Below, piece by piece: positions 45,817-63,700 of a DNA stretch of 64,000 nucleotides (the stretch's first letter is position 1; each line of letters starts with the position of its first letter). A program made the position numbers and the translations under genes. The notes below the pieces were generated by a model. The model did no database searches and was not told where the DNA came from. It saw only the letters and a list, made by a program, of their open reading frames with translations. Origin of the DNA: Anaeramoeba ignava BMAN (Eukaryota; Protista; Anaeramoebae). The stretch lies in the NCBI GenBank assembly GCA_028826165.1, contig JAPDFW010000127.1, forward strand, positions 1-64,000. Direction: 5' to 3'.

Positions 45817-48800
45817 ATGAAAGAACCAGAAATTTGTCCAATTTGTTTTAAAAATTATTCAAATGAAAGAAAACCAATGATTATTTGCAAAAAAAGTCAC
45901 AATATTTGTTCTCTTTGCACAACAAAAATGGATCATTGCATTTTTTGTCAAAGTTCATTTAATCATTTCAAACCATTTGTGAATGAATCTTTATTGAAAT
46001 TTATTAAATCAATTCAAAAAAAAGCAAATGAACAAATTATTCCATTTATTCCAATTTCAGAATTAGAAATTAAATCAGAACCTTTTGCTACAGGAGGAAC
46101 TGCTCAAATGTTCAAAGCAAAATGGAAAGGAAAAGATGTTGCTATCAAAAGATTAATGTTTCTAAATGATCCAAAAAAAAATCAACAATTTGAAAACGAA
46201 ATTAAATTAGGAATGAAATTAGATCATCCTCATATTATCAAAACGTATGGAAAAACTCAAATGGATACTGTTTTGGGGATTATAATGGAATATGCAGAAC
46301 AAGGAGATTTATCTAAAAAAATTCCAAATTTAAAATATGAAGAACAAATTGAATATTCTTTACAAATTATTGAAGGAATTGAAGTTTTACATTCAAATTT
46401 AATTATTCATCGTGATTTGAAACCTGAAAATATCTTAATATCAAATAATCAAGCAAAAATTACTGATTTTGGAATTTCAAAAGTAAGAGAACACACTTTA
46501 CAAGTTACTTCAGCTATAGTTTCACTTGGTTATTCTGCTCCAGAAATGTTTGAACAAGGAAAAAAATATGATAATTCTTGTGATATTTTCAGTTTATCAA
46601 TGATTTTATATGAAATTTTCTCAAAGAAAAAAGCTTTTGAAAATATAAAACCTGTAATGATTCCACTCAAATTAATACAAGGAGAAAGACCTGAATTTCC
46701 AAATAATTTCCCAAAAGAATTAAGTGAATTAATTAAAAAAGGATGGAGTTCAAATCCAAAAGAAAGATGTTCATTAAATGAATTTACTGAATGTTTAAAT
46801 ATGATGAAAAATAGAAGTAATTTTTAATTTTTAAATCAAAATAATTTCTTTTCCAAATCTCATCATTTTTTTTTTCAATTTAATTCATTCAAAAAAAAAA
46901 AATCAAAATCGAAATCAAAAAACCAAAACTATTTTTTTCACAAATTTGTTTACAAATACAAACTAATCAAAATCAAAAAAAACGAATCAAACACAAATAT
47001 TTCATCAATTACTTTATTTTAATCAAATTTCTAATAATAATTTTGGGAATCAATTTCAAGAAAATCAAAATGTATTTATAATTTTATTTCCAAAAATAAA
47101 TAATCAAATAAATTATTTAATAATAACAAAAATATCTAAATTTAAAAATATAAATTAATTTATAATTTGATTTTAAAAAAATTTTTTAGATTTCAAAATT
47201 ATCTCAAAATGAAAACCAAGAAATTTGTCCAATTTGTTTTAAAAATTATTCAAATGAAAGAAAACCAATGATAATTTGTCAAGAAAGTCATAATATTTGT
47301 GTTCATTGTGTCAAAACACTTAACAGTTGTCCTTTTTGTAAAAGTTCATTTAATCATTTCAAACCAATTGTGAATGAATCTTTATTATCCTTTATTAAAT
47401 CAATTCAAAAAAATACAAATGAACAAATTATTCCATTTATTCCAATTTCAGAATTAGAAATTAAATCAGAACCTTTTGCTACAGGAGGAACTGCTCAAAT
47501 GTTCAAAGCAAAATGGAAAGGAAAAGATGTTGCTATCAAAAGATTAATGTTTCTAAATGATCCAAAAAAAAATCAACAAATTGAAAATGAAATTAAATTA
47601 TCAATGAAATTATCACATCCTCATATTATCAAAATGTATGGAAAAACTGAAATGGATAATAAGATGGGGATTATAATGGAATATGCAGAACAAGGAGATT
47701 TATCTAAAAAAATTCCAAATTTAAAATATGAAGAACAAATTGAATATTCTTTACAAATTATTGAAGGAATTGATTATTTACATTCAAATTTAATTATTCA
47801 TCGTGATTTGAAACCTGAAAATATCTTAATATCAAATAATCAAACAAAAATTACTGATTTTGGAATTTCAAAAGTAAGAAAACACACTTTACAAGTTACT
47901 TCAGCTATTATTTCACTCCATTATTCTGCTCCAGAAATGTTTGAACAAGGAAAAAAATATGATAATTCTTGTGATATTTTCAGTTTATCAATGATTTTAT
48001 ATGAAATTTTCTCAAAGAAAAAACCTTTTGAAAATGAAAATTTTGCGATGATTTCACTCAAATTAATACAAGGAGAAAGACCTGAATTTCCAAATAATTT
48101 TCCCAAAAGAATTAAGTGAATTAATCAAAAAAGGATGGAGTTCAAATCCAAAAGAAAGATGTTCATTAAATGAATTTACTGAATGTTTGAATATGATGAA
48201 AAATAAAAGTAATTTCAATATTTAATTAAATGAAAAACTAAACAAAATTAAAATTAAAATTAAAATTAAAATTAAAATTAAAATTAAAATTAAAATTAAA
48301 ATTAAAATTAAAATTAAAATTAAAATTAAAATTAAAATTAGGACCAAAACCAAAAATAAAACGAGAACTGAAACCAATAATAGATTCAATAATAGATTCA
48401 AAACAAAAAATAAAAACAGTCGATTTGAGTGTAAAACATTGATATTTAAAAATATGAAAAAAAAAAAGAATTAAATTTTCAATAATTTCCATTTCAAAAA
48501 AATAATACAATAAAATCAGGATTCTCAAAAAACACTCGATGAACTAATAACAACAGTACGAACTTTGGAAATCCAAAAAGAAAAAAAACAAAAATCTCGA
48601 GAAGCAAAAAAAAATGCATTCAAAGAACTTAAACCTTATTTTCAAAAACTTCGAGATTCAATTCGCAAACATGATGAAAGTAAATATTTATCCATATTGT
48701 TTAAATCAAATGAAAAAATGTGTAAAATGAATTAATTCAATCCATTTCATTTTTTTTAATTAAAAGATAACTTAGAAAAATTAGAAGAAATTGATATTGA

Positions 48801-51800
48801 TTTTATTTTTCAATCTATGAATGCTTTTCCAATATATCAATTTATTCAAGAAAGTTGTTGTATGGCTATAAGAAAATTCACTGAAACCGAAACAAGTACA
48901 AATTGTTAAATCCATTTTAATTTTCAAAATTCTATTAATTTTTCTTTCCAAAAAAAAAAAAAAAGGAATTTCATTTGATTTTTCAGATTTTAATGGATTT
49001 GATTTAGTTATCAAAGCAATGAATAATTTCCCATTCAAAAGATTTCTCCAACTTCAATCTTTGTTAATTTTTATTCAAATGGGAAAATCAAGTTGTAAAT
49101 TTAATTTTAATCCAAAAAACAAAAAATTTAATTAATCCAAAAAAACAAAAAATTAATCCAAAAAACAAAGCAAATAGAAGCCAAATTAAACGCTATTCTG
49201 GACCTGATACAATATTTTCAACAATCACTAATTTTCCACAAGATAATGATATTTTTCGTACAGGATATGAAGCTTTAAAAACTTTAGAATTTGGTCAAAA
49301 TCGTAAATTTACATTTTTCAATTAAAAAACAAAATAAATAATTCAATCTTTTTTTTCTTTTTTCATTTTAATAATTAATTTTCCTTTCTTTTATTTTAAT
49401 CAAATTATTTGAAAAACAAATAGATATTACTTACAACCTTAATTTAAAGAAAAGTACAAATTTTATTTCATTTTTCCAAAACCAAAAACAAAAAAAAATT
49501 ATAATTTGAAAAATTATGAAATTATTTTTATTAGATCATGTGGAAAAAAGAGAACGAGAGAAATTAAAATCATTACAAACAGAATTTGATAAAACAAAAT
49601 ATGTAAATCACATATTTTTAACAGGAATTTATTCATTTATTTATTCATTTATCATTCATTTTTCTTTCTTTTTTTTAAATAGTTTTTTGATTTTTGGTCA
49701 CAAGTAAACTTCCTTTCTTCCAAATAATTTGATTAAAATAAGAGGAAAATTCATTTAATCAACATTTCAAACAATTTTTGTTTTTTTTTTTTGATTTATT
49801 TTTGATTAAAAATTTTAGGAATCTTTATTTCATTTCTATGCAAAAAAGAACGAAGAACTTGATTTTGGAATTTTACAAATTTTTTTGAAAAAAAAATCAG
49901 ATATCACTAAACTCGATGTATAAATTATTTTATCCAAATTTCTAAAACAAAACATAACAATTTTTTTCTTATTAAATTTTAATTCCTTTTTTTTTAAAAA
50001 AAAATATTAAAATTATAAAAATCTAGAAAGTAATTCTAAATCAAAAAAATAAATACTTGACTAAATTTTTCAACTCATTTTAATCTCTTTTATTTATTTT
50101 GTAGACTATATTCCAAAAAAAAGCAGATGTACAAAAAGCAATTTTATCAAAATATTTTCTTGAATTTATTTGAATTTATTTATATTGTTTTTTTTAGAAA
50201 GTAATTCATATTTTAATTTTATTTAGAAAGAAAATTCTCATTTTTTCTTTTATTTTTCTTCTTCTTTAAATATTTAAAAAGAATACACCAATTCATTATT
50301 TATGTCAAAATGAATCAATTAATTTGAGGATAATAAAATTAATGTGCGATTATAAGGCTAATTTTAATTTGAAAGGAGTAAATTTTGGATTTTATTTTTT
50401 TTTCTTATTAATCCTAAAAATATTCATTTCTTTCTTTCTTAAAAAAAAATTAAAAATTTTTAGACAGTAAAATATAAATATCATTAAAAAATTGAAATAA
50501 CAAATAATCTAAAACAAATTGAAATCAAAACAAAAAGAATGTAAAATTAAAAAATATTTATAAATTGAATTGAATGAAAAATTTATACATTTATAAAATG
50601 ATTGAGATAGGAAGTAAAAAATAAAATAAAATAAAATAAAAATTCAATTATTTATCTCAAATTCTTTTCAATTAAATTATTTAAAAAATCAAAGTTAACA
50701 CCATTACATTATTTATGCCAAAATCCATCAATAAATTTCAAAATCATTAGATTATTAGCAAATCATAAAGCCGATTTTACTTTTAAAGGAGTAAATTTAT
50801 TTTTAATTAATTTTTAATTTATTTTTAATTTATTTTATTAATAATTGAATAGAAAGTAATCTCATTAATTTAAATTAACAAAATTCCTTTATTATTTTCT
50901 GAAATTCCAAAAAAAAAATTTAAAACAAATTGAAATCAAAACAAAAAGAATGTAAAATTAAAAAATATTTATAAATTGAATTGAATGAAAAATTTATTCA
51001 TTTATAAAATGATTGAGATAGGAAGTAAAAAATAAAATAAAATAAAATAAAAATTCAATTATTTATCTCAAATTCTTTTCAATTAAACTATTTAAAAAAT
51101 CAAAGTTAACACCATTACATTATTTATGCCAAAATCCATCATTAAATTTGGAAATCATTACATTATTAGCAAATCATAAAGCCGAGTTTACTTCTAAAGG
51201 AGTAAATTTATTTTTAATTTATTTTTAATTCATTTTTAATTTATTTTATTAATAATTGAATAGAAAGTAATCTCATTAATTTAAATTAACAAAATTCCTT
51301 TATTATTTTCTGAAATTCCAAAAAAAAAAGGATGTAAAAATATTCTTTTTTTTTTTTTTGCTTCTTAAAATCTTAAAAAAAAATTCATAAAAAAAAAAGG
51401 AAGTAAAAATATAATAAAAATAAAAATAATAGAAACTAAATTTACAAAAAAAAATAAACAAAAAAAAGGATACACCAATACATTACCTTTTTCAAAATCC
51501 ATCAATAACAACAGAGATTATTAAATTCTTCATTGAAAAAGGATATAGTTTTGATACTCAAAATGTAAGTAAATAAATATTTAATTTACACTTCTTTTGA
51601 AATAAAGTTTTTGATAAATTTTTCAAAATTATTTCCCAAATAGAGTGTAAAAAATATCATTTCAAGATGATCAAAAAAAAGTTCATTTTTCTTTTCATTC
51701 CATTTTTTTATATGGGAAATAGTTTGTAAAAATTTAACTATTTTTAAATTCAAAAAAAAAATGAATTAAAATTAAATTTGAATTTGAAATTTAATTGTTT

Positions 51801-54669
51801 CTTTTCCTCAAAACTCATTTTTAGCAAGTAATTCATTTTTTTCTTCATCTTCACATAATTTTTCAATAATATTAATTTAACATTTCTCATATAATTCCAA
51901 AAGATGTCTCCTATTCATTATTTGTGTAAAAACCCATCAATTACATTTGAAATGATTTATGCATTAGTTCAAAGTGGAGTAATTAATTGGAATTTAGGTG
52001 GAGTAAGTTTTTATTTCTTAAATTTTTATTAAAAATAATAAACACATCATTTAATAACAAAATAATTTTAGCAAGTAAACTATTTAAAGAGGAAAAAAAA
52101 TGGTTTTTCTCTAATAATATTATTAAAATATAATTAAATGTATTAGCAAGTAAATACTCTTTCAAAATTTCATTCCTTTTCATTCCTTTTTATTTTTCAA
52201 TCCAAAAAAAAATAGGATGTAAAAATTATTTTTATTAATAAATAAATTCTGTTTTTATTTTCTAAATGATAATAAAAATAATAAAAATAACAATAGAATG
52301 TAAATCATTTAAATTTATTCCTTCTTCTTTTATGTTAAATATTAATTTGTTTTTGAAATGATTTTTTTTGTTTTAATAAAATAGCATGTAAATAATTTAT
52401 CGAAAATTACTTATTAAACATCAATTATAATTTCCCCTATAAAAAAAATAATAAAATTTAAAATTAGTTTGTAAAAAAAATATATATAATTAAACATTTT
52501 TTTTATTGATAAAAATTTTGAATTAATTAATTATTCCAAAAAATAAACAAATAGGATGTAAAATAAAACAATAGAAAAACATTTTTTTTAATTTATTCAA
52601 TATTAAAATTATTTTATTATTTTTTTTTACATATAAAAAAGCATACACCTTTACATGATTTATGTATCAATACTTCAGTTACCAAAGAAATTATTAAAAT
52701 ATTAATTAATAATGGAGCTGATTTTCATATTCAATGGGTAAAAATTTATAAAAAACAATTTAAAATTATATTAAATTTTGATTTAATTTTTATATAAATT
52801 AAATAGAAAGTAAATTATTTATATCATCTCAATATTTTTTATATTTTTGTTATTAAATCCTTTTTCAATCTTCTCTTTTGCTTTTTTCTTGAAAAATAAT
52901 AACAAATAGATTGTAAAATAATTAATAAAAATAAACAAAAATAAATTTAAAATTAATCATAAAATTTGTTTTTCTGATTAATTTTTATGAAACAGAAAGT
53001 AAATTAAAAATTATATAAAATTTTTTTTGGAATGATTTCTTTGTATTTAATAGAATATTTTAACAAATAGGAAGTAAAATTAGAAATTTTTAAAGAAAAA
53101 TTTAACTAAATTAAAATTTATAATAGAATGTAAATAATCTTTTTTTTTTTGATTTAATAATTAATTTAATTATTTTTTCTTTATAAATAATCAGGCAGTA
53201 ATCATTTAAAATTTTAATTAAAATGGAAAAGAAAAATCTTATTTAAGATTAAAAATTAAATTGAAATCAAGTTAGTACGTAAATCAAATTAATAAAAAAT
53301 AATGATACAATATTTATTTTTCTTACTTAAATTCTAAATAAAATAGTTTGTAAATTTTGATTTATTTTTTAATTTTGAGCAATTATTGAAAAATAAAAAT
53401 ACTTAAATTGAATCAATAGAGAGTAATAAATTATATTTAAATCATTTTCCTTTTTTCTTTTCAATAAAAAAAATTAAATAAAAAAAATTTAGGGAGTAAA
53501 TAAATTCAAAACAAAAACAAAAATAATTTCAAATAACAATAATTTAAATAATTTTCTTCATATTTTTTTTAGTATTCTCCACTTCATTTTTTATGTTTGA
53601 GCCACGTAATTACAACAGAAATAATTGATATTTTGATTCAAAATCAAGCAAATTTCAATTTACAAATTGTAAAAATCAATTTAATTATTTTCCTTTGATA
53701 ATTATTCAAATTTTTTATTTGGATTGAAAATTATTAAACAGATTGTAAATAAATCCTTTATTAATTAAAAAAAAATTTTTTAAAATTGAAGTTTAAATCT
53801 CATTTAAATTCTAAATTCTAAAATTAAATAGGATGTAAATAAATATTATTTCCAAAACAAAAACTTCAAGTTTTCACTAAAATTTAACTTTAAATTTCAA
53901 TTTAATAAATAGGAAGTAAATAAATACAAAAATAAATTGATATTTTTAAATTTTCTTTTTCTTTTTTCTTAAAATAATTCTTTAATAGGAAGTAAAAAAA
54001 ATTTATTTAAAATTAATCTTGTTTTAATTGATTGTAAACATTTTAATTTGAAATTTTTCCAAAAATAAAAGGGAGTAAATGATAAATTTATTTAATTCTT
54101 TTTTTTAGAACAAATTAATTAAATTCATTTTTGATTTCAAAATAAATAATGAATAATTGATTAAATAGCAAGTAAATCAATTTAAAAAATTAAATTTTGG
54201 TTTACTTTTTATTATTAAATCCAATTATTTAGCCTGTAAATAATAAGATAAAATTTCCAAATAATAAATGAACTAATATTTAGATAATTTGAAAATTAAA
54301 TAGGGAGTAAATTTAATCTAAAAAAAAATAATCTAAAAATATCTTAAAATAATCTTAAAAATATCTAAAAAAAATATCTAAAAAAATATCTTAAAAAAAT
54401 AATCTAAAAAAATAATCTAAAAAAATAATCTAAAAAAATAATCTAAAAAAATATCTAAAAAATATCTAAAAAATAATCTAAAAATATAATCTAAAAAAAT
54501 ATATCTTTGTTTTTAGGCAACTGTATTGCATTGTCTTTGTCAAAATCCATTAATTTCAGAAGAAATGATCAAATTATTGAAAGGAAGCAATGCTGATTTT
54601 TCTATAAAGAGTTCTTATGGAACAACACCAAAAGATTTTCTTCCTAATCATCTTCAGAAACTGATTTAA
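45817..54669 (+). CDS. Gene A: RING-kinase-RING-kinase, ARM-like repeats, 9 ankyrin repeats with 3-nt microexon arrays
   Basis: Phase-compatible GT-AG exons: 45817-46816, 47061-47071, 47190-48208 (1-nt frameshift ~48100), 48342-48430, 48520-48679, 48767-48895, 48966-49094, 49171-49302, 49424-49453, 49535-49602, 49683-49703; ankyrin exons 49819-49917, 50282-50377, 50695-50790, 51106-51201, 51469-51564, 51904-52002, 52642-52737, 53573-53668, 54517-54669(stop). TPLH-type motifs in each ankyrin exon. Confidence 0.8.
50027..54306 (+). other. Eight arrays totalling 39 single-codon (3-nt) microexons between ankyrin exons
   Basis: AG|NNN|GTA units mostly ~60-110 nt apart. Arrays read K,(24-nt TIFQKKAD),K / T,N,E / K,N,E / K,D,E / S,F,Q / Q,Q,D,N,H,F,D / K,I,K,E,N,A,Y,F,R,G / I,D,E,E,G,Q,P,G. 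None is a stop codon. Confidence 0.85.
50500..51320 (+). repeat. 411-bp tandem duplication of one ankyrin exon plus its microexons
   Basis: Constant 411-nt offsets: 50538/50949, 50611/51022, 50695/51106, 50853/51264. Confidence 0.92.
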
Positions 54670-54764
54670 AAACAAAAACAAATGATTTTTCTTTTCATTT
54701 TTTTTGGCACATTACAATTTAATTAATTTTTTTCCTTTGAATTTTGTTGGATTGGAAATCAAGT

Positions 54765-55130
54765 TCAATTTCAATTTCAAATTCAATTTCAATTTCAAAT
54801 TCAATTTCAAATTCAATTTCAATTTCAAATTCAATTTCAATTTCAAATTCAATTTCAATTTCAATTTCAATTTCAAATTCAATTTCAAATTCAAATTCAA
54901 TTTCAATTTCAATTTCAAATTCAATTTCAAATTCAAATTCAATTTCAATTTCAATTTCAATTTCAAATTCAATTTCAATTTCAATTTCAATTTCAATTTC
55001 AATTTCAAATTCAATTTCAAATTCAAATTCAAATTCAAATACAAATTCAATTTCAATTTCAAATTCAAATTCAAATACAAATTCAATTTCAATTTCAAAT
55101 TCAAATTCAATTTCAATTTCAATTTCAATT
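54765..55130. repeat. (AATTTC/AAATTC)n hexamer satellite, intergenic
   Basis: Directly visible; source of the NF/KL/SI ORFs. Confidence 0.93.
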
Positions 55131-56034: not shown

Positions 56035-59000
56035 ATGGAAGAACCAGAAATTTGTCCAATTTGTTTTAAAAATTATTCAAATGAAAGAAAACCAATGATG
56101 ATTTGTCAAGAAAGTCATAATATTTGTGTTCATTGTGTTAAAAAATTTAACAGTTGTCCTTTTTGTAAAAGTTCATTTAATCATTTCAAACCAATTCCAA
56201 ATTTAATTTTATTGAAATTTATTGGATCAATTCCAAAAAATACAAATGAACAAATTATTCCATTTATTCCAATTTCTGAATTAGAAGTTGAATCAAAACC
56301 TTTTGCTTCAGGAGGAACTGCTCAAATTTTCAAAGCAAAATGGAAAGGAAAAGATGTTGTTATCAAAAGAATAATGTTTTTGAATGATCCAAAAAAAAAT
56401 CAAAAATTCGAAAATGAAATTAAATTAGGAATGAAATTATTACATCCTCATATTATCAAAATGTATGGAAAAACTGAAAAAGATAATATGATTGGAATTG
56501 TAATGGAATATGCAGAACAAGGAGATTTATCTCAAAAAATTCCAAATTTAAAATATGAAGAACAAATTGAATATTCTTTACAAATTATCAAAGGAATTGA
56601 TTATTTACATTCAAATTTAATTATTCATCGTGATTTACAACCTGAAAATATCTTATTATCAAATAATCAAACAAAAATTGCAGGTTTTGGAATTTCAAAA
56701 GTAAGAGAATATAGTTTAAAAGTTTCTTTGTCTATAGTTTCACTTGGTTATTCTGCTCCAGAACTTTTTGAAAAAGGAAAAAAATATGATAATTCTTGTG
56801 ATATTTTCAGTTTATCAATGATTTTATATGAAATTTTCTCAAAGAAAAAAGCTTTTGAAAATGAAAATCAAATGCTAATTATTTACAAAGTAACGAAAGG
56901 AGAAAGACCTGAATTTCCAAATAATTTTCCAAAAGAATTAAGTGAATTAATCAAAAAAGGATGGAGTTCAAATCCAGAAGAAAGATGTTCATTAAATGAA
57001 TTTACTAAATGTTTAAATATGATGAAAAATAAAAGTAATTTTTAATTTTTAAATCAAAACAATTTCTTTCCAAATCTCATCATTTTTTTTTTCAATTTAA
57101 TTCATTCAAAACCAAAAACCAAAAAAAAACGAATCAAACACAAATATTTCATCAATTACTTTGTTTTAATCAAATTTCTAACAATAATTTTGGGAATCAA
57201 TTTCAAGAAAATCAAAATGTATTTATAATTTTATTTCCAAAAATAAATAATCAAATAAATTAGTTAATAATAACAAAAATATCTAAATTTAAAAATATAA
57301 ATTAATTTATAATTTGATTTTAAAAAATTTTTTAGATTTCAAAATTATCTCAAAATGAAAACCCAGAAATTTGTCCAATTTGTTTTAAAAATTATTCAAA
57401 TGAAAGAAAACCAATGATAATTTGTCAAGAAAGTCATAATATTTGTGTTCATTGTGTTAAAAAATTTAATAGTTGTCCTTTTTGTAAAAGTTCATTTAAT
57501 CATTTCAAACCATTTGTGAATCATCCCTTCTTGAAATTTATTGGATCAATTCCAAAAAATACAAATGAACAAATTATTCCATTTATTCCAATTTCTGAAT
57601 TAGAAGTTGAATCAAAACCTTTTTCTTCAGGAGGAACTGCTCAAATTTTCAAAGCAAAATGGAAAGGAAAAGATGTTGTTATCAAAAGAATAATGTTTTT
57701 GTATGATCCAAAAAAAAATCAACAATTCGAAAATGAAATTAAATTAGGAATGAAATTATTACATCCTCATATTATCAAAATGTATGGAAAAACTGAAAAA
57801 GATAATATGATTGGAATTGTAATGGAATATGCAGAACAAGGAGAATTAAAACAAAAAATTCCAAATTTAAAATATGAAGAACAGATTGAATATTCTTTAC
57901 AAATTATCAAAGGAATTGAAGTTTTACATTCAAATTTAATTATTCATCGTGATTTGAAACCTCAAAATATCTTAATATCAAATAATCAAGCAAAAATTAC
58001 TGATTTTGGAATTTCAAAAATAAGAGAATATAGTTTAAAAGTTTCTTCAGCTATTATTTCACTTGGTTATTCTGCTCCAGAACTTTTTGAAAAAGGAAAA
58101 AAATATGATAATTCTTGTGATATTTTCAGTTTATCAATGATTTTATATGAAATTTTCTCAAAGAAACAACCTTTTGAAAATGAAAATGAAATGCTAATTA
58201 TTTACAAAGTAGTGAAAGGAGAAAGACCTGAATTTCCCAATAATTTTCCAAAAGAATTAAGTGAATTAATCAAAAAAGGATGGAGTTCAAATCCAAAAGA
58301 AAGATGTTCATTAAATGAATTTACTAAATGTTTAAATATGATGAAAAATAAAAGTAATTTTTAATTTTTAAATCAAAACAATTTCTTTCCAAATCTTATC
58401 ATTTTTTTTTTCAATTTAATTCATTCAAAAAAAAAATCAAAAATCAAAATCAAAAAACCAAAACTATTTTTTTCACAAATTTGTTTACAAATAGAAATTC
58501 CAAAACTGAAAAAAACGAATCAAAGGCAAATCTCAGGAAAGAAAAAAGAATTTTATCCATCAAAACTTTCAATTAATCAAAAAAGCAATGAAACGAATCT
58601 TCAACAAGGAAATAGATCAAATTTGGGTGACTCTTATGATCAATCAGAAAAATTAACAATATCAAAAACTCCCACAAATCCAACAGGAAATACACGCCAA
58701 AATTTAAGTTCAAATCTAAAAGGAAACGGAAGATTAAGTCGAAGAGCAAATCCAAGAGCAAATCCAAGAGCAAATCCAAGAGTAAGTCCAACAGGAAATA
58801 GAATCAATCCAAGAACAAATCCAAGAACAAATCCAACAGGAAATAAAATCAATCCAAGAACAAATCCAAGAGGAAGTCCAATGAATATAAGAACAAATAC
58901 AAGAGGAAGTCCAAGAGTAAGTCCAACAGGAAATAAAATCAATCCAAGAGGAAGTCCAATGAATATAAGAACAAATACAAGAGGAAATCCAAGAGTAAGT

Positions 59001-59747
59001 CCAACAGGAAATAGAATCAATCCAAGAGGAAGTCCAATGAATATAAGAACAAATACAAGAGGAAGTCCAAGAGTAAGTCCAACAGGAAATAAAATCAATC
59101 CAAGAACAAATCCAATGAATATAAGAGCAAATCCAAGAACAAGTCCAAGAGTAAGTCCAACAGGAAATAAAATCAATCCAAGAGCAAATCCAAGAACAAA
59201 TCCAACAGGAAATAAAATCAATCCAAGAACAAATCCAAGAACAAATCCAAGAACAAATCCAAGAACAAATCCAATGAATATAAGAACAAATACAAGAGGA
59301 AGTCCAAGAGTAAGTCCAACAGGAAATAGAATCAATACAAGAGGAAGTCCAAGAGCAAATCCAACAGGAAATAAAATCAATCCAAGAACAAATCCAAGAA
59401 CAAATCCAAGAACAAATCCAAGAACAAATCCAATGAATATAAGAACAAATACAAGAGTAAGTCCAAGAGTAAGTCCAACAGGAAATAAAATCAATACAAG
59501 AGGAAGTCCAAGAGCAAATCCAACAGGAAATAAAATCAATACAAGAACAAATTCAAGATCAAGTTCAAGAGGAAATACAACAAGTCCAAGAATTAGTCAA
59601 AATTCACATTTAAGAACAAATTCAAATCTAAGAACAAGTCCACAAATTAGTACAAATATCAATCCAAGAGGAAATCCAACAGGACGACCTAGAGCAAATA
59701 CAAACATAAGATTTTCCAAATTCTCGAACAACATTCACAAAAAATAA
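56035..59747 (+). CDS. Gene B: RING-pseudokinase-RING-kinase with an Arg/Asn/Pro-rich repeat tail
   Basis: Exons 56035-57034, 57208-57218, 57336-58353, 58495-59747, all phase-compatible. Domain 1 has HRDLQPEN and AGFG; domain 2 has HRDLKPQN and DFG. Confidence 0.78.
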
Positions 59748-60716
59748 GAATCCAAGCAAATGTTTTTTTCATTTAATTCTCGTTTTCTTTTTTTTGAATT
59801 TTTTTAATCCAGAAAAAAAATAAAACTCTCAATTTCAGATTTTCTCATTCCAATCCAAAAATTATTCGAAAGAAAATTACTCTAAAAAAATTTCAAAATT
59901 CAAAAACACAAAATTATTTTCTAAATTTTTGGATTAAATTATTTTTGAATTTTAAAAAAGAATTTATTATTAATATTAAATTAAAATTATTAAAAATTAT
60001 GAAATAAAATTAATTAAAATATTTTATTTATTATTTTATTTAATTTTTAATTATAATTAATTTATTATTTTACAATAAATTTAATTAAGAAATAATTTTA
60101 AAAAAGAATTTATTATTAATATTAAATTAAAATTGATTTAAAAATATAAATTTAAATTGAAAAAAAAATAAAAAAGAAAATAATTGTAAATTATAAAAAG
60201 ATTTATATTCTTAAATTAATAAGAAAATTAATTATAAAAATATAATTATATGTAAATATATTATTTATTATTTACAATAATATTATTTATTATTATATAT
60301 TATTTATCATTTAGAAAAAGAAAATTGATTTTTAATTGATTAAAAATTTGATATTATTTTTTTTACTCTTTTAAATTTACAAAAAAATAACAAAAATAAA
60401 ACAATTTAAATTATTCTTTATATTTTATATTCATTCCATTTATTTTATTTATTCCACTTTTTTTTTTTTTAATAAATTTTGATCTAAAAATAAAAATAAA
60501 AAAGGAGAAAAAATAAAAAAAGGAGAAAAAAAATAATTTTTTTTTTTGGGATTTTAAAAAAAAAAAGAAACAAAATTTTAAATTAAAATTAAATTTAAAA
60601 AAAATGAAACATTCATTTTCCCTTTTTATTTCATTTAATTTTTATTTCATTTAATTTTTATTTCATTTTCATTTAATTTCCTCTTTTTTTTTTGTTTTTT
60701 TTTTTAATTTTTAAAC

Positions 60717-63700
60717 ATGGAAGAACCAGAAATTTGTCCAATTTGTTTTAAAAATTATTCAAATGAAAGAAAACCAATGATGATTTGTCAAGAAAGTCAT
60801 AATATTTGTGTTCATTGTGTTAAAAAATTTAACAGTTGTCCTTTTTGTAAAAGTTCATTTAATCATTTCAAACCAATTCCAAATTTAATTTTATTGAAAT
60901 TTATTGGATCAATTCCAAAAAATACAAATGAACCAATTATTCCATTTATTCCAATTTCAGAATTAGAAGTTGAATCAAAACCTTTTGCTTTTGGTGGATT
61001 TGCTCAAATTTTCAAAGCAAAATGGAAAGGAAAAGATGTTGTTATCAAAAGGTTAATGCTTATGGATAATCCAAAAAATAATCAACAATTCGAAAATGAA
61101 CTTAAATTAGGAATGAAATTATCACATCCTCATATTATCAAAATGTATGGAAAAACTGAAAAAGATAATATGATTGGAATTGTAATGGAATATGCAGAAC
61201 AAGGAGATTTATCTCAAAAAATTCCAAATTTAAAATATGAAGAACAAATTGAATATTCTTTACAAATTATTAAAGGAATTGAAGTTTTACATTCAAATTT
61301 AATTATTCATCGTGATTTGAAACCTGAAAATATCTTAATATCAAATAATCAAGCAAAAATTACTGATTTTGGAATTTCAAAAGTAAGAGATCACAGTTTA
61401 CAAGTTACTTCAGCTATTATTTCAATTGGTTATTCTGCTCCAGAACTTTCTGAAAAAGGAAAAAAATATGATAATTCTTGTGATATTTTCAGTTTATCAA
61501 TGATTTTATATGAAATTTTCTCAAAGAAAAAAGCTTTTGAAAATGAAAATCATCTGCAATTATTGGGATCATTAATGAAAGGAGAAAGACCTGAATTTCC
61601 CAATAATTTTCCAAAAGAATTAAGTGAATTAATCAAAAAAGGATGGAGTTCAAATCCAAAAGAAAGATGTTCATTAAATGAATTTACTAAATGTTTAAAT
61701 ATGATGAAAAATAAAAGTAATTTTTAATTTTTAAATCAAAATAATTTCTTTCCAAATCTTATCATTTTTTTTTTCAATTTAATTCATTCAAAAAAAAAAT
61801 CAAAAATCAAAATCAAAAAACCAAAACTATTTTTTTCACAAATTTGTTTACAAATAGAAATTCCAAAACCGAAAAAAACGAATCAAACACAAATATTTCA
61901 TCAAATAGACAATTCTAATCAAATTTCTAACAATAATTTTGGGAATCAATTTCAAGAAAATCAAAATGTATTTATAATTTTATTTCCAAAAATAAATAAT
62001 CAAATAAATTATTTAATAATAACAAAAATATCTAAATTTAAAAATATAAATTAATTTATAATTTGATTTTAAAAAATTTTTTTAGATTTCAAAACTATCT
62101 CAAAATGAAAACCCAGAAATTTGTCCAATTTGTTTTAAAAATTATTCAAATGAAAGAAAACCAATGATAATTTGTCAAGAAAGTCATAATATTTGTGTTC
62201 ATTGTGTTAAAAAATTTAACAGTTGTCCTTTTTGTAAAAGTTCATTTAATCATTTCAAACCAATTCCAAATTTAATTTTATTGAAATTTATTGGATCAAT
62301 TCCAAAAAATACAAATGAACCAATTATTCCATTTATTCCAATTTCAGAATTAGAAGTTGAATCAAAACCTTTTTTTATTGGTGGATTTGCTCAAATTTTC
62401 AAAGCAAAATGGAAAGGAAAAGATGTTGTTATCAAAAGAATGATGTTTTTGTATGATCCAAAAAATAATCAACAATTCGAAAATGAAATTAAATTAGGAA
62501 TGAAATTATTACATCCTCATATTATCAAAATGTATGGAAAAACTGAAATGGATAATATGATTGGAATTGTAATGGAATATGCAGAACAAGGAGAATTAAA
62601 ACAAAAAATTCCAAATTTAAAATATGAAGAACAAATTGAATATTCTTTACAAATTATCAAAGGAATTGATTATTTACATTCAAATTTAATTATTCATCAT
62701 GATTTGAAACCTCAAAATATCTTATTATCAAATAATCAAACAAAAATTGCAGGTTTTGGAATTTCAAAAGTAAGAGATCACAGTTTACAAGTTTCTTCAG
62801 TTATAGTTTCACTTGGTTATTCTGCTCCAGAACTTTTTGAAAAAGGAAAAAAATATGATAATTCTTGTGATATTTTCAGTTTATCAATGATTTTATATGA
62901 AATTTTCTCAAAGAAAAAAACTTTTGAAAATGAAAATGCAATGGAGATTACATTCAAATTAATGAAAGGAGAAAGACCTGAATTTCCCAATAATTTTCCA
63001 AAAGAATTAAGTGAATTAATCAAAAAAGGATGGAGTTCAAATCCAAAAGAAAGATGTTCATTAAATGAATTTACTAAATGTTTAAATATGATGAAAAATA
63101 AAAGTAATTTTTAATTTTTAAATCAAAATAATTTCTTTCCAAATCTTATCATTTTTTTTTTCAATTTAATTCATTCAAAATCAAAAACCAAAAACGAATC
63201 AAACACAAATATTTCATCAAATAGACAATTCTAATAAGATTTCTAATAATAATTTTGGGAATCAATTTCAAGAAAATCAAAATGTATTTATAATTTTATT
63301 TCCAAAAATAAATAATCAAATAAATTATTTAATAATAACAAAAATATCTAAATTTAAAAATATAAATTAATTTATAATTTGATTTTAAAAAATTTTTTTA
63401 GATTTCAAAACTATCTCAAAATGAAAACCCAGAAATTTGTCCAATTTGTTTTAAAAATTATTCAAATGAAAGAAAACCAATGATAATTTGTCAAGAAAGT
63501 CATAATATTTGTGTTCATTGTGTTAAAAAATTTAACAGTTGTCCTTTTTGTAAAAGTTCATTTAATCATTTCAAACCATTTGTGAATCATCCCTTCTTGA
63601 AATTTATTGGATCAATTCCAAAAAATACAAATGAACCAATTATTCCATTTATTCCAATTTCAGAATTAGAAGTTGAATCAAAACCTTTTTTTATTGGTGG

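Follow-up and report, generated by a model that had tools for sequence, protein, structure and literature searches.

Introduction

Dscam1 carries tandem exon arrays at positions of binding specificity, and one exon is picked from each array. The AAG exon of NCAM is an isolated exon of 3 nucleotides (nt), a size overlooked by gene finders and aligners. Loop-extended ankyrins, including LoopDARPins, and the antibody complementarity-determining region H3 (CDR-H3) present long, variable hairpin loops on a conserved scaffold. The subject here is an ankyrin repeat gene of the free-living protist Anaeramoeba ignava BMAN, in which arrays of predicted single-codon exons lie between the ankyrin exons. 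It is found in the first 64,000 nt (forward strand) of contig JAPDFW010000127.1, assembly GCA_028826165.1, a stretch called the window below.

An isolated 3-nt exon is also known from RPS24 (PMC12207440). Runs of very short exons have been described for the micro-exon genes (MEGs) of Schistosoma, whose exons measure 6-81 nt (main text; 3-81 in the abstract), mostly 15, with introns of up to 5 kb, and whose proteins are secreted and occur as many spliced isoforms (bioRxiv 10.1101/2023.06.21.545858). The window gene was originally predicted, from its sequence, to splice its units in any combination and so to vary ankyrin loops in the manner of Dscam or the MEGs.

Single-codon exons in a transcript

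A profile built from the window exons retrieved P0223, a protein from an A. ignava Trinity transcript (EukProt c20457_g1_i1.p2). Its gene (L044, G000:C73) is a paralogue of the last repeats of the window gene, and between its ankyrin exons are arrays of 14 and 8 AG-NNN-GT units, one with the donor GTG. P0223 carries exactly those 14 + 8 residues in genomic order (22/22 units included), so the units are real spliced exons, all joined in that isoform. The single-codon unit is thus used as an exon in L044, as the original prediction had proposed for the window; homology to L044 points to the same use in the window gene.

The further proposal, that any subset might be used to give up to 2^25 isoforms, found no support: P0223 joins all its units in order, arrays of two or three units produce a normal repeat length, and the introns are of modal length. 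A rule by which three of N units are chosen was rejected on the same inclusion of 22/22. P0223 was the only transcript of the family recovered in homologue searches, no isoforms of a family protein appeared in cluster look-ups, and a metagenome scan with P0223 yielded nothing confirmed.

Three-letter units in the window

Between positions 49819 and 54669 the + strand holds 40 AG-N3-GTA motifs and the - strand none; other spacings are rare (AG-N2-GTA 4, N4 2, N5 2 and N6 1). Markov nulls of order 1-3, with 300 runs each, gave mean expectations of 0.9-2.1 motifs and a maximum of 8, which agrees with the earlier estimate that few would arise by chance (40 found, 1-2 expected). All 39 unit positions originally listed are correct, and the 40th match, at 53272, overlaps the unit at 53276; an odd middle unit at 50105-50128 had been omitted. 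It resembles an Asp unit whose acceptor has changed, and NCBI has a 24-nt exon there. The absence of stop triplets also held, at 0/39 (P = 0.0135 from local base composition), and among clustered units of ankyrin loci there is 1 in 178, with 12.4 expected.

The intervals between units and exons start with GT and end with AG. They measure 53-109 nt apart from one of 210, the last intron, which is stretched by a short tandem repeat at 54330-54500; the median is 76. This is the modal intron length that the supplement of PMC11550330 gives for A. ignava, which fits separate removal of each intron. The window introns are unlike each other and their splice sites are intact.

What the arrays encode

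Comparison of repeats and the AlphaFold model of P0223 place the units in the beta-hairpin loop just before the TPLH motif, the location given in the original prediction. In the model (mean predicted local distance difference test score, pLDDT, 90.8) helices and cores are intact and the inserts are loops, that of 14 residues being less certain (pLDDT ~60). Most other ankyrin genes sampled (L027-L031, L035-L040) have a 96-nt exon followed by two units, which fill the variable x-x of the hairpin D-x-x-G-x-T-P-L-H. The exons of the window's family start one residue later, and three units are therefore needed. With all units included, repeats in the window come to 35, 35, 35 and 35 residues; intronless Anaeramoeba ankyrins have repeats of 35-38. 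An automated tally, with some chaining errors, counted 43 distinct arrays of two units, 18 of three and 29 longer.

Array sizes along the window gene are 2 (+1 odd), 3, 3, 3, 3, 7, 10 and 8 units, and the long arrays at the last three junctions differ in size and sequence between paralogues, from ~4 to 14 units. The modelling suggests that arrays of 2-3 form a normal hairpin and those of 7-14 or more long protruding loops. The last loop, intron-free inside the terminal exon, is also length-variable between paralogues, so that these proteins have long variable loops whichever way the loops are encoded. The longest ankyrin array seen, of 21 units, precedes the terminal ankyrin exon of L046 (G000:C104:965245-968406).

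Arrays elsewhere in the genome

The 42.8-Mb assembly of 147 contigs was scanned with a strict tandem pattern, overlapping pairs being counted. The comparison of N3 with N2 and N4 spacing had been proposed as a control with the original prediction, and it gave 502 tandem pairs at 3 nt against 26 at 2 nt (24 of them from one satellite) and 6 at 4 nt; there were 4 at 6 nt. An origin of the units in chance matches, satellite DNA or errors of assembly could draw on the very AT-rich genome and on the 134 matches of the reversed-pattern control of the 3-nt scan. We consider it extremely improbable in view of the genome-wide excess (502 pairs against 4-26 at other sizes) and of the excess in the window, confined to a single strand; for the paralogue it is refuted, 22 residues matching an independent transcriptome protein.

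Many other array-bearing ankyrin genes seem to end in BTB-like exons, an assignment not checked by profile. Arrays also occur in tandem genes identified by Pfam as BTB-BACK-TLDc (L022/L023, G000:C1:1055000-1075000, - strand, and L025), with 7-30 units in one TLDc loop. These arrays are in phase 1, each codon therefore spanning two units, and a reading of those in L022/L023 as a hydrophobic helix was rejected on account of that phase. An in-order reading meets no stop and yields a sequence with much Asp, Tyr and Phe; the long TLDc loops are rich in Tyr, Asp, Phe and Trp. In the host open reading frame (ORF) 36% of codons start with AA, AG or GA, but just 2/93 TLDc units do, which leaves skip joins nearly stop-free (4/1074 possible joins create a stop).

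This stop avoidance is the best hint of tolerated skipping. The all-included form might be common while stochastic or regulated skipping still gave each gene a working repertoire of loop variants, skips in phase-1 arrays also making new codons at the joins. Such a repertoire would find further support in the frame-preserving character of all units, strictly 3 nt genome-wide, and in the cost of ~75 nt per isolated codon, which suggests some benefit. It is harder to square with the inclusion of every unit in P0223 and with array sizes that equal the structural need at most junctions, and the TLDc bias could come from common descent of the units or from a Tyr/Asp/Phe loop preference. We regard this explanation as possible and well short of probable. 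A fuller version, in which an all-included main isoform is accompanied by many skip variants per gene and the phase-1 joins of the BTB-TLDc genes make new codons, giving a recognition repertoire with junctional diversity and no DNA rearrangement, strikes us as doubtful. If true, the skipping repertoire would have a free-living protist diversifying recognition by splicing at one-codon resolution.

The BTB-like gene L021 (G000:C1:409-413 kb, - strand) holds ~32 units, several with lost GT donors, and its introns are alike. The 20 nt downstream of its units are 82% identical between units and the triplets 39%, a pattern suggestive of birth, change and death of units through tandem duplication; identity on the upstream side is inflated by the anchor motif. 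Inside the array is a 1-kb TTA repeat. Codon-plus-intron units might accordingly have spread neutrally or selfishly by tandem duplication, kept wherever the residue is tolerated and the frame maintained, with no selected recognition function. The minisatellite-like arrays of L021 with their dead units are as this would predict, linkers also hold arrays (L032-L034), and four A. flamelloides ankyrin-BTB genes manage without them. We judge it unlikely all the same, as the triplets of L021 diverge far faster than the flanking introns, long TLDc loops have the biased composition noted above, the same loop hosts arrays in dozens of genes, and the window introns are old and mutually unlike, yet have kept their sites.

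The linker array of L032-L034 has six units (Pro/Lys/Glu), separates a coiled-coil from the ankyrin region, and has some introns of ~150 nt. More long arrays, with an 85-nt period and introns alike, are present at G000:C87:271.8-277.2 kb. Two copies in opposite orientation (G000:C61:332209-335885 and 391793-395458) match the window gene at 83-84% identity along 3.7 kb and keep the order of the units seen, with some codons changed. The four A. flamelloides ankyrin-BTB genes showed no excess of 3-nt units, and in 3/3 that could be mapped the repeats are in long exons. On this small sample, the one-codon-exon architecture may be specific to A. ignava.

Gene structure and annotation

The features of the window gene are collected in Table 1. 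Nine phase-0 ankyrin exons are present as originally described, and the lengths of 96 or 99 nt given for them apply to eight; the terminal exon is longer and contains the stop codon. The gene continues 5′ of 49819, the first position of the region originally described. The locus is annotated as A. ignava KAJ5067457.1, which starts in the tail of the kinase ORF (48193-48207) and splices to 48342, and its neighbour KAJ5067461.1 is by Pfam a RING-kinase-ankyrin protein. Because the NCBI model runs from the kinase tail to the ARM-like exons and the neighbour has this composition, the window gene is probably a RING-kinase-ARM-ankyrin gene. Ankyrin membership is supported by Pfam (Ank_2, E 3.9e-18 on NCBI model P0126). 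Pfam domains found were ankyrin, kinase, RING-like and a weak ARM only; there was no ROC-COR or NB-ARC.

Table 1. Features of the window gene (positions in the window)
Feature	Position	Strand	Remarks
RING-like finger and protein kinase exon, probably 5′ part of the gene	47268..48209	+	Pfam Pkinase E 4.6e-50
Ordinary exons, ARM-like/helical region	48342..49703	+	NCBI model P0126 mapped; ARM_LRRK2 E 8e-05, below cut-off
Ankyrin exon 1, 99 nt, phase 0, cap-like repeat	49819..49917	+	
Array 0: Lys units 50027 and 50198 flanking odd middle unit 50105-50128	50027..50200	+	
Ankyrin exon 2, 96 nt	50282..50377	+	
Array 1: 3 single-codon exons T, N, E	50464..50613	+	
Ankyrin exon 3, 96 nt	50695..50790	+	
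Array 2: 3 single-codon exons K, N, E	50853..51024	+	
Ankyrin exon 4, 96 nt	51106..51201	+	
Recent tandem duplication, period 411 nt: repeat exon and its 3 units	50510..51271	+	Near-identical alignment
Array 3: 3 single-codon exons K, D, E	51264..51402	+	
Ankyrin exon 5, 96 nt	51469..51564	+	
Array 4: 3 single-codon exons S, F, Q	51644..51827	+	
Ankyrin exon 6, 99 nt	51904..52002	+	
Array 5: 7 single-codon exons, long loop A	52072..52557	+	Homologous arrays ~6-10 units in paralogues
Ankyrin exon 7, 96 nt	52642..52737	+	
Array 6: 10 single-codon exons, long loop B	52807..53495	+	Homologue: 14-unit array of L044
Ankyrin exon 8, 96 nt	53573..53668	+	
Array 7: 8 single-codon exons, Gly last, long loop C	53742..54306	+	Homologue: 8-unit array of L044
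Terminal ankyrin exon, 153 nt: uninterrupted last loop and stop codon	54517..54669	+	

The public A. ignava ankyrin models (P0125, P0126, P0132, P0137, P0124) have 32-residue repeats and miss the 3-nt exons. Since the NCBI models leave out the units, the 32-residue repeats reflect a gap in annotation. The direct exon-exon joins of these models were rejected as a sign of skipping, being a blind spot of gene prediction for 3-nt exons. As the public models lack these residues and show short repeats and truncations, the recognition families of A. ignava are wrongly annotated.

Compared with its sister copies, the kinase exon carries one base too many near 48100, which breaks its frame in this assembly. 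Six near-identical tandem RING-kinase ORFs occupy 45817-48209 and 56035-63114 of the window. A double-kinase fusion was not confirmed, the splice from the first ORF (46817) to the second (47190) being one base out of phase as assembled. Simple repeats lie downstream of the window gene at 54760-55130.

Proposed mechanism

We favour, with a probability of about 0.62, the explanation that the single-codon exons are spliced jointly and that the loops are diversified in the genome, as units are duplicated, lost and mutated. Each ankyrin core would be one phase-0 exon and each hairpin-loop residue would have its own 3-nt exon, set between GT-AG introns of ~76 nt. The short introns would be recognised and removed one at a time, which would render exon size unimportant and disfavour skipping, with its doubled intron. 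The main mRNA would contain all units in order, as in the paralogue. Duplicating, silencing or mutating a codon-plus-intron unit would alter a loop by one residue at a time with no frameshift, so that paralogues would come to share cores and differ in loops, as their comparison suggests. The RING, kinase and BTB partners suggest that the array-bearing proteins are intracellular, and their likely role would be to recognise ligands as sensors or ubiquitin-ligase adaptors.

Several points weigh against this explanation. The transcript support is a single sequence, from a paralogue and at the protein level, and a Trinity contig represents the dominant path only; the homologue searches recovered no protein from a transcript of the window gene itself. 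The support for change of units comes from comparisons between paralogues. The near absence of stops at TLDc skip joins is also predicted by tolerance of skipping. Finally, the window gene has two blemishes, the surplus base near 48100 and the odd unit at 50105-50128; each may reflect decay or a fault in the assembly.

Fourteen consecutive one-codon exons correctly spliced, and hundreds of units in one genome, are notable even on a conservative reading. They provide a natural test of minimum exon size and of how the spliceosome handles back-to-back introns. They would also constitute a frame-safe route by which loops on a fixed scaffold evolve in length and sequence, one residue at a time.

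Comparison with known systems

No description of long runs of 3-nt exons was found in literature searches, whose coverage excluded subscription papers, and the word microexon was not found in the exon and intron passages or the supplements of the A. ignava genome paper. The constituents are ordinary spliceosomal introns, and to our knowledge the results suggest a gene architecture that has so far gone undescribed.

The single-codon exons of RPS24 and NCAM are handled by the normal spliceosome, as here, but are lone units; in A. ignava a run of 14 is confirmed and runs of up to 30 are predicted, with hundreds of units per genome. Dscam1 shares the tandem arrays, but L044 of A. ignava joins all its units, and the co-inclusion of 22/22 in P0223 contradicts an exclusive choice of the Dscam type. 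The likeness to Dscam and the MEGs that was originally drawn therefore stands for the consecutive, short, frame-preserving exons and fails for mutually exclusive choice. With the MEGs of Schistosoma the window gene has in common runs of many consecutive very short exons, mostly frame-preserving in the MEGs, in variable proteins (bioRxiv 10.1101/2023.06.21.545858). The A. ignava units are a uniform 3 nt, their introns are ~76 nt, they encode loops of folded ankyrin or TLDc domains, and the known transcript includes them all; microexons are a minority of the coding sequence (39 of roughly 600+ codons), and the introns are not long (median 76 nt).

The brown algal ROCO-LRR and NB-ARC-TPR genes resemble the window gene in having one repeat per exon, duplication of repeat exons, and repeats fused to signalling domains, and are candidate immune receptors (PMC3341825, PMC11378527). 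They differ in that whole repeats are shuffled or skipped, and in repeat fold and lineage; single-codon loop exons are not described for them in the abstracts. With LoopDARPins and CDR-H3 the A. ignava loops have an analogy of shape only. The architecture as a whole fits none of the families tested.

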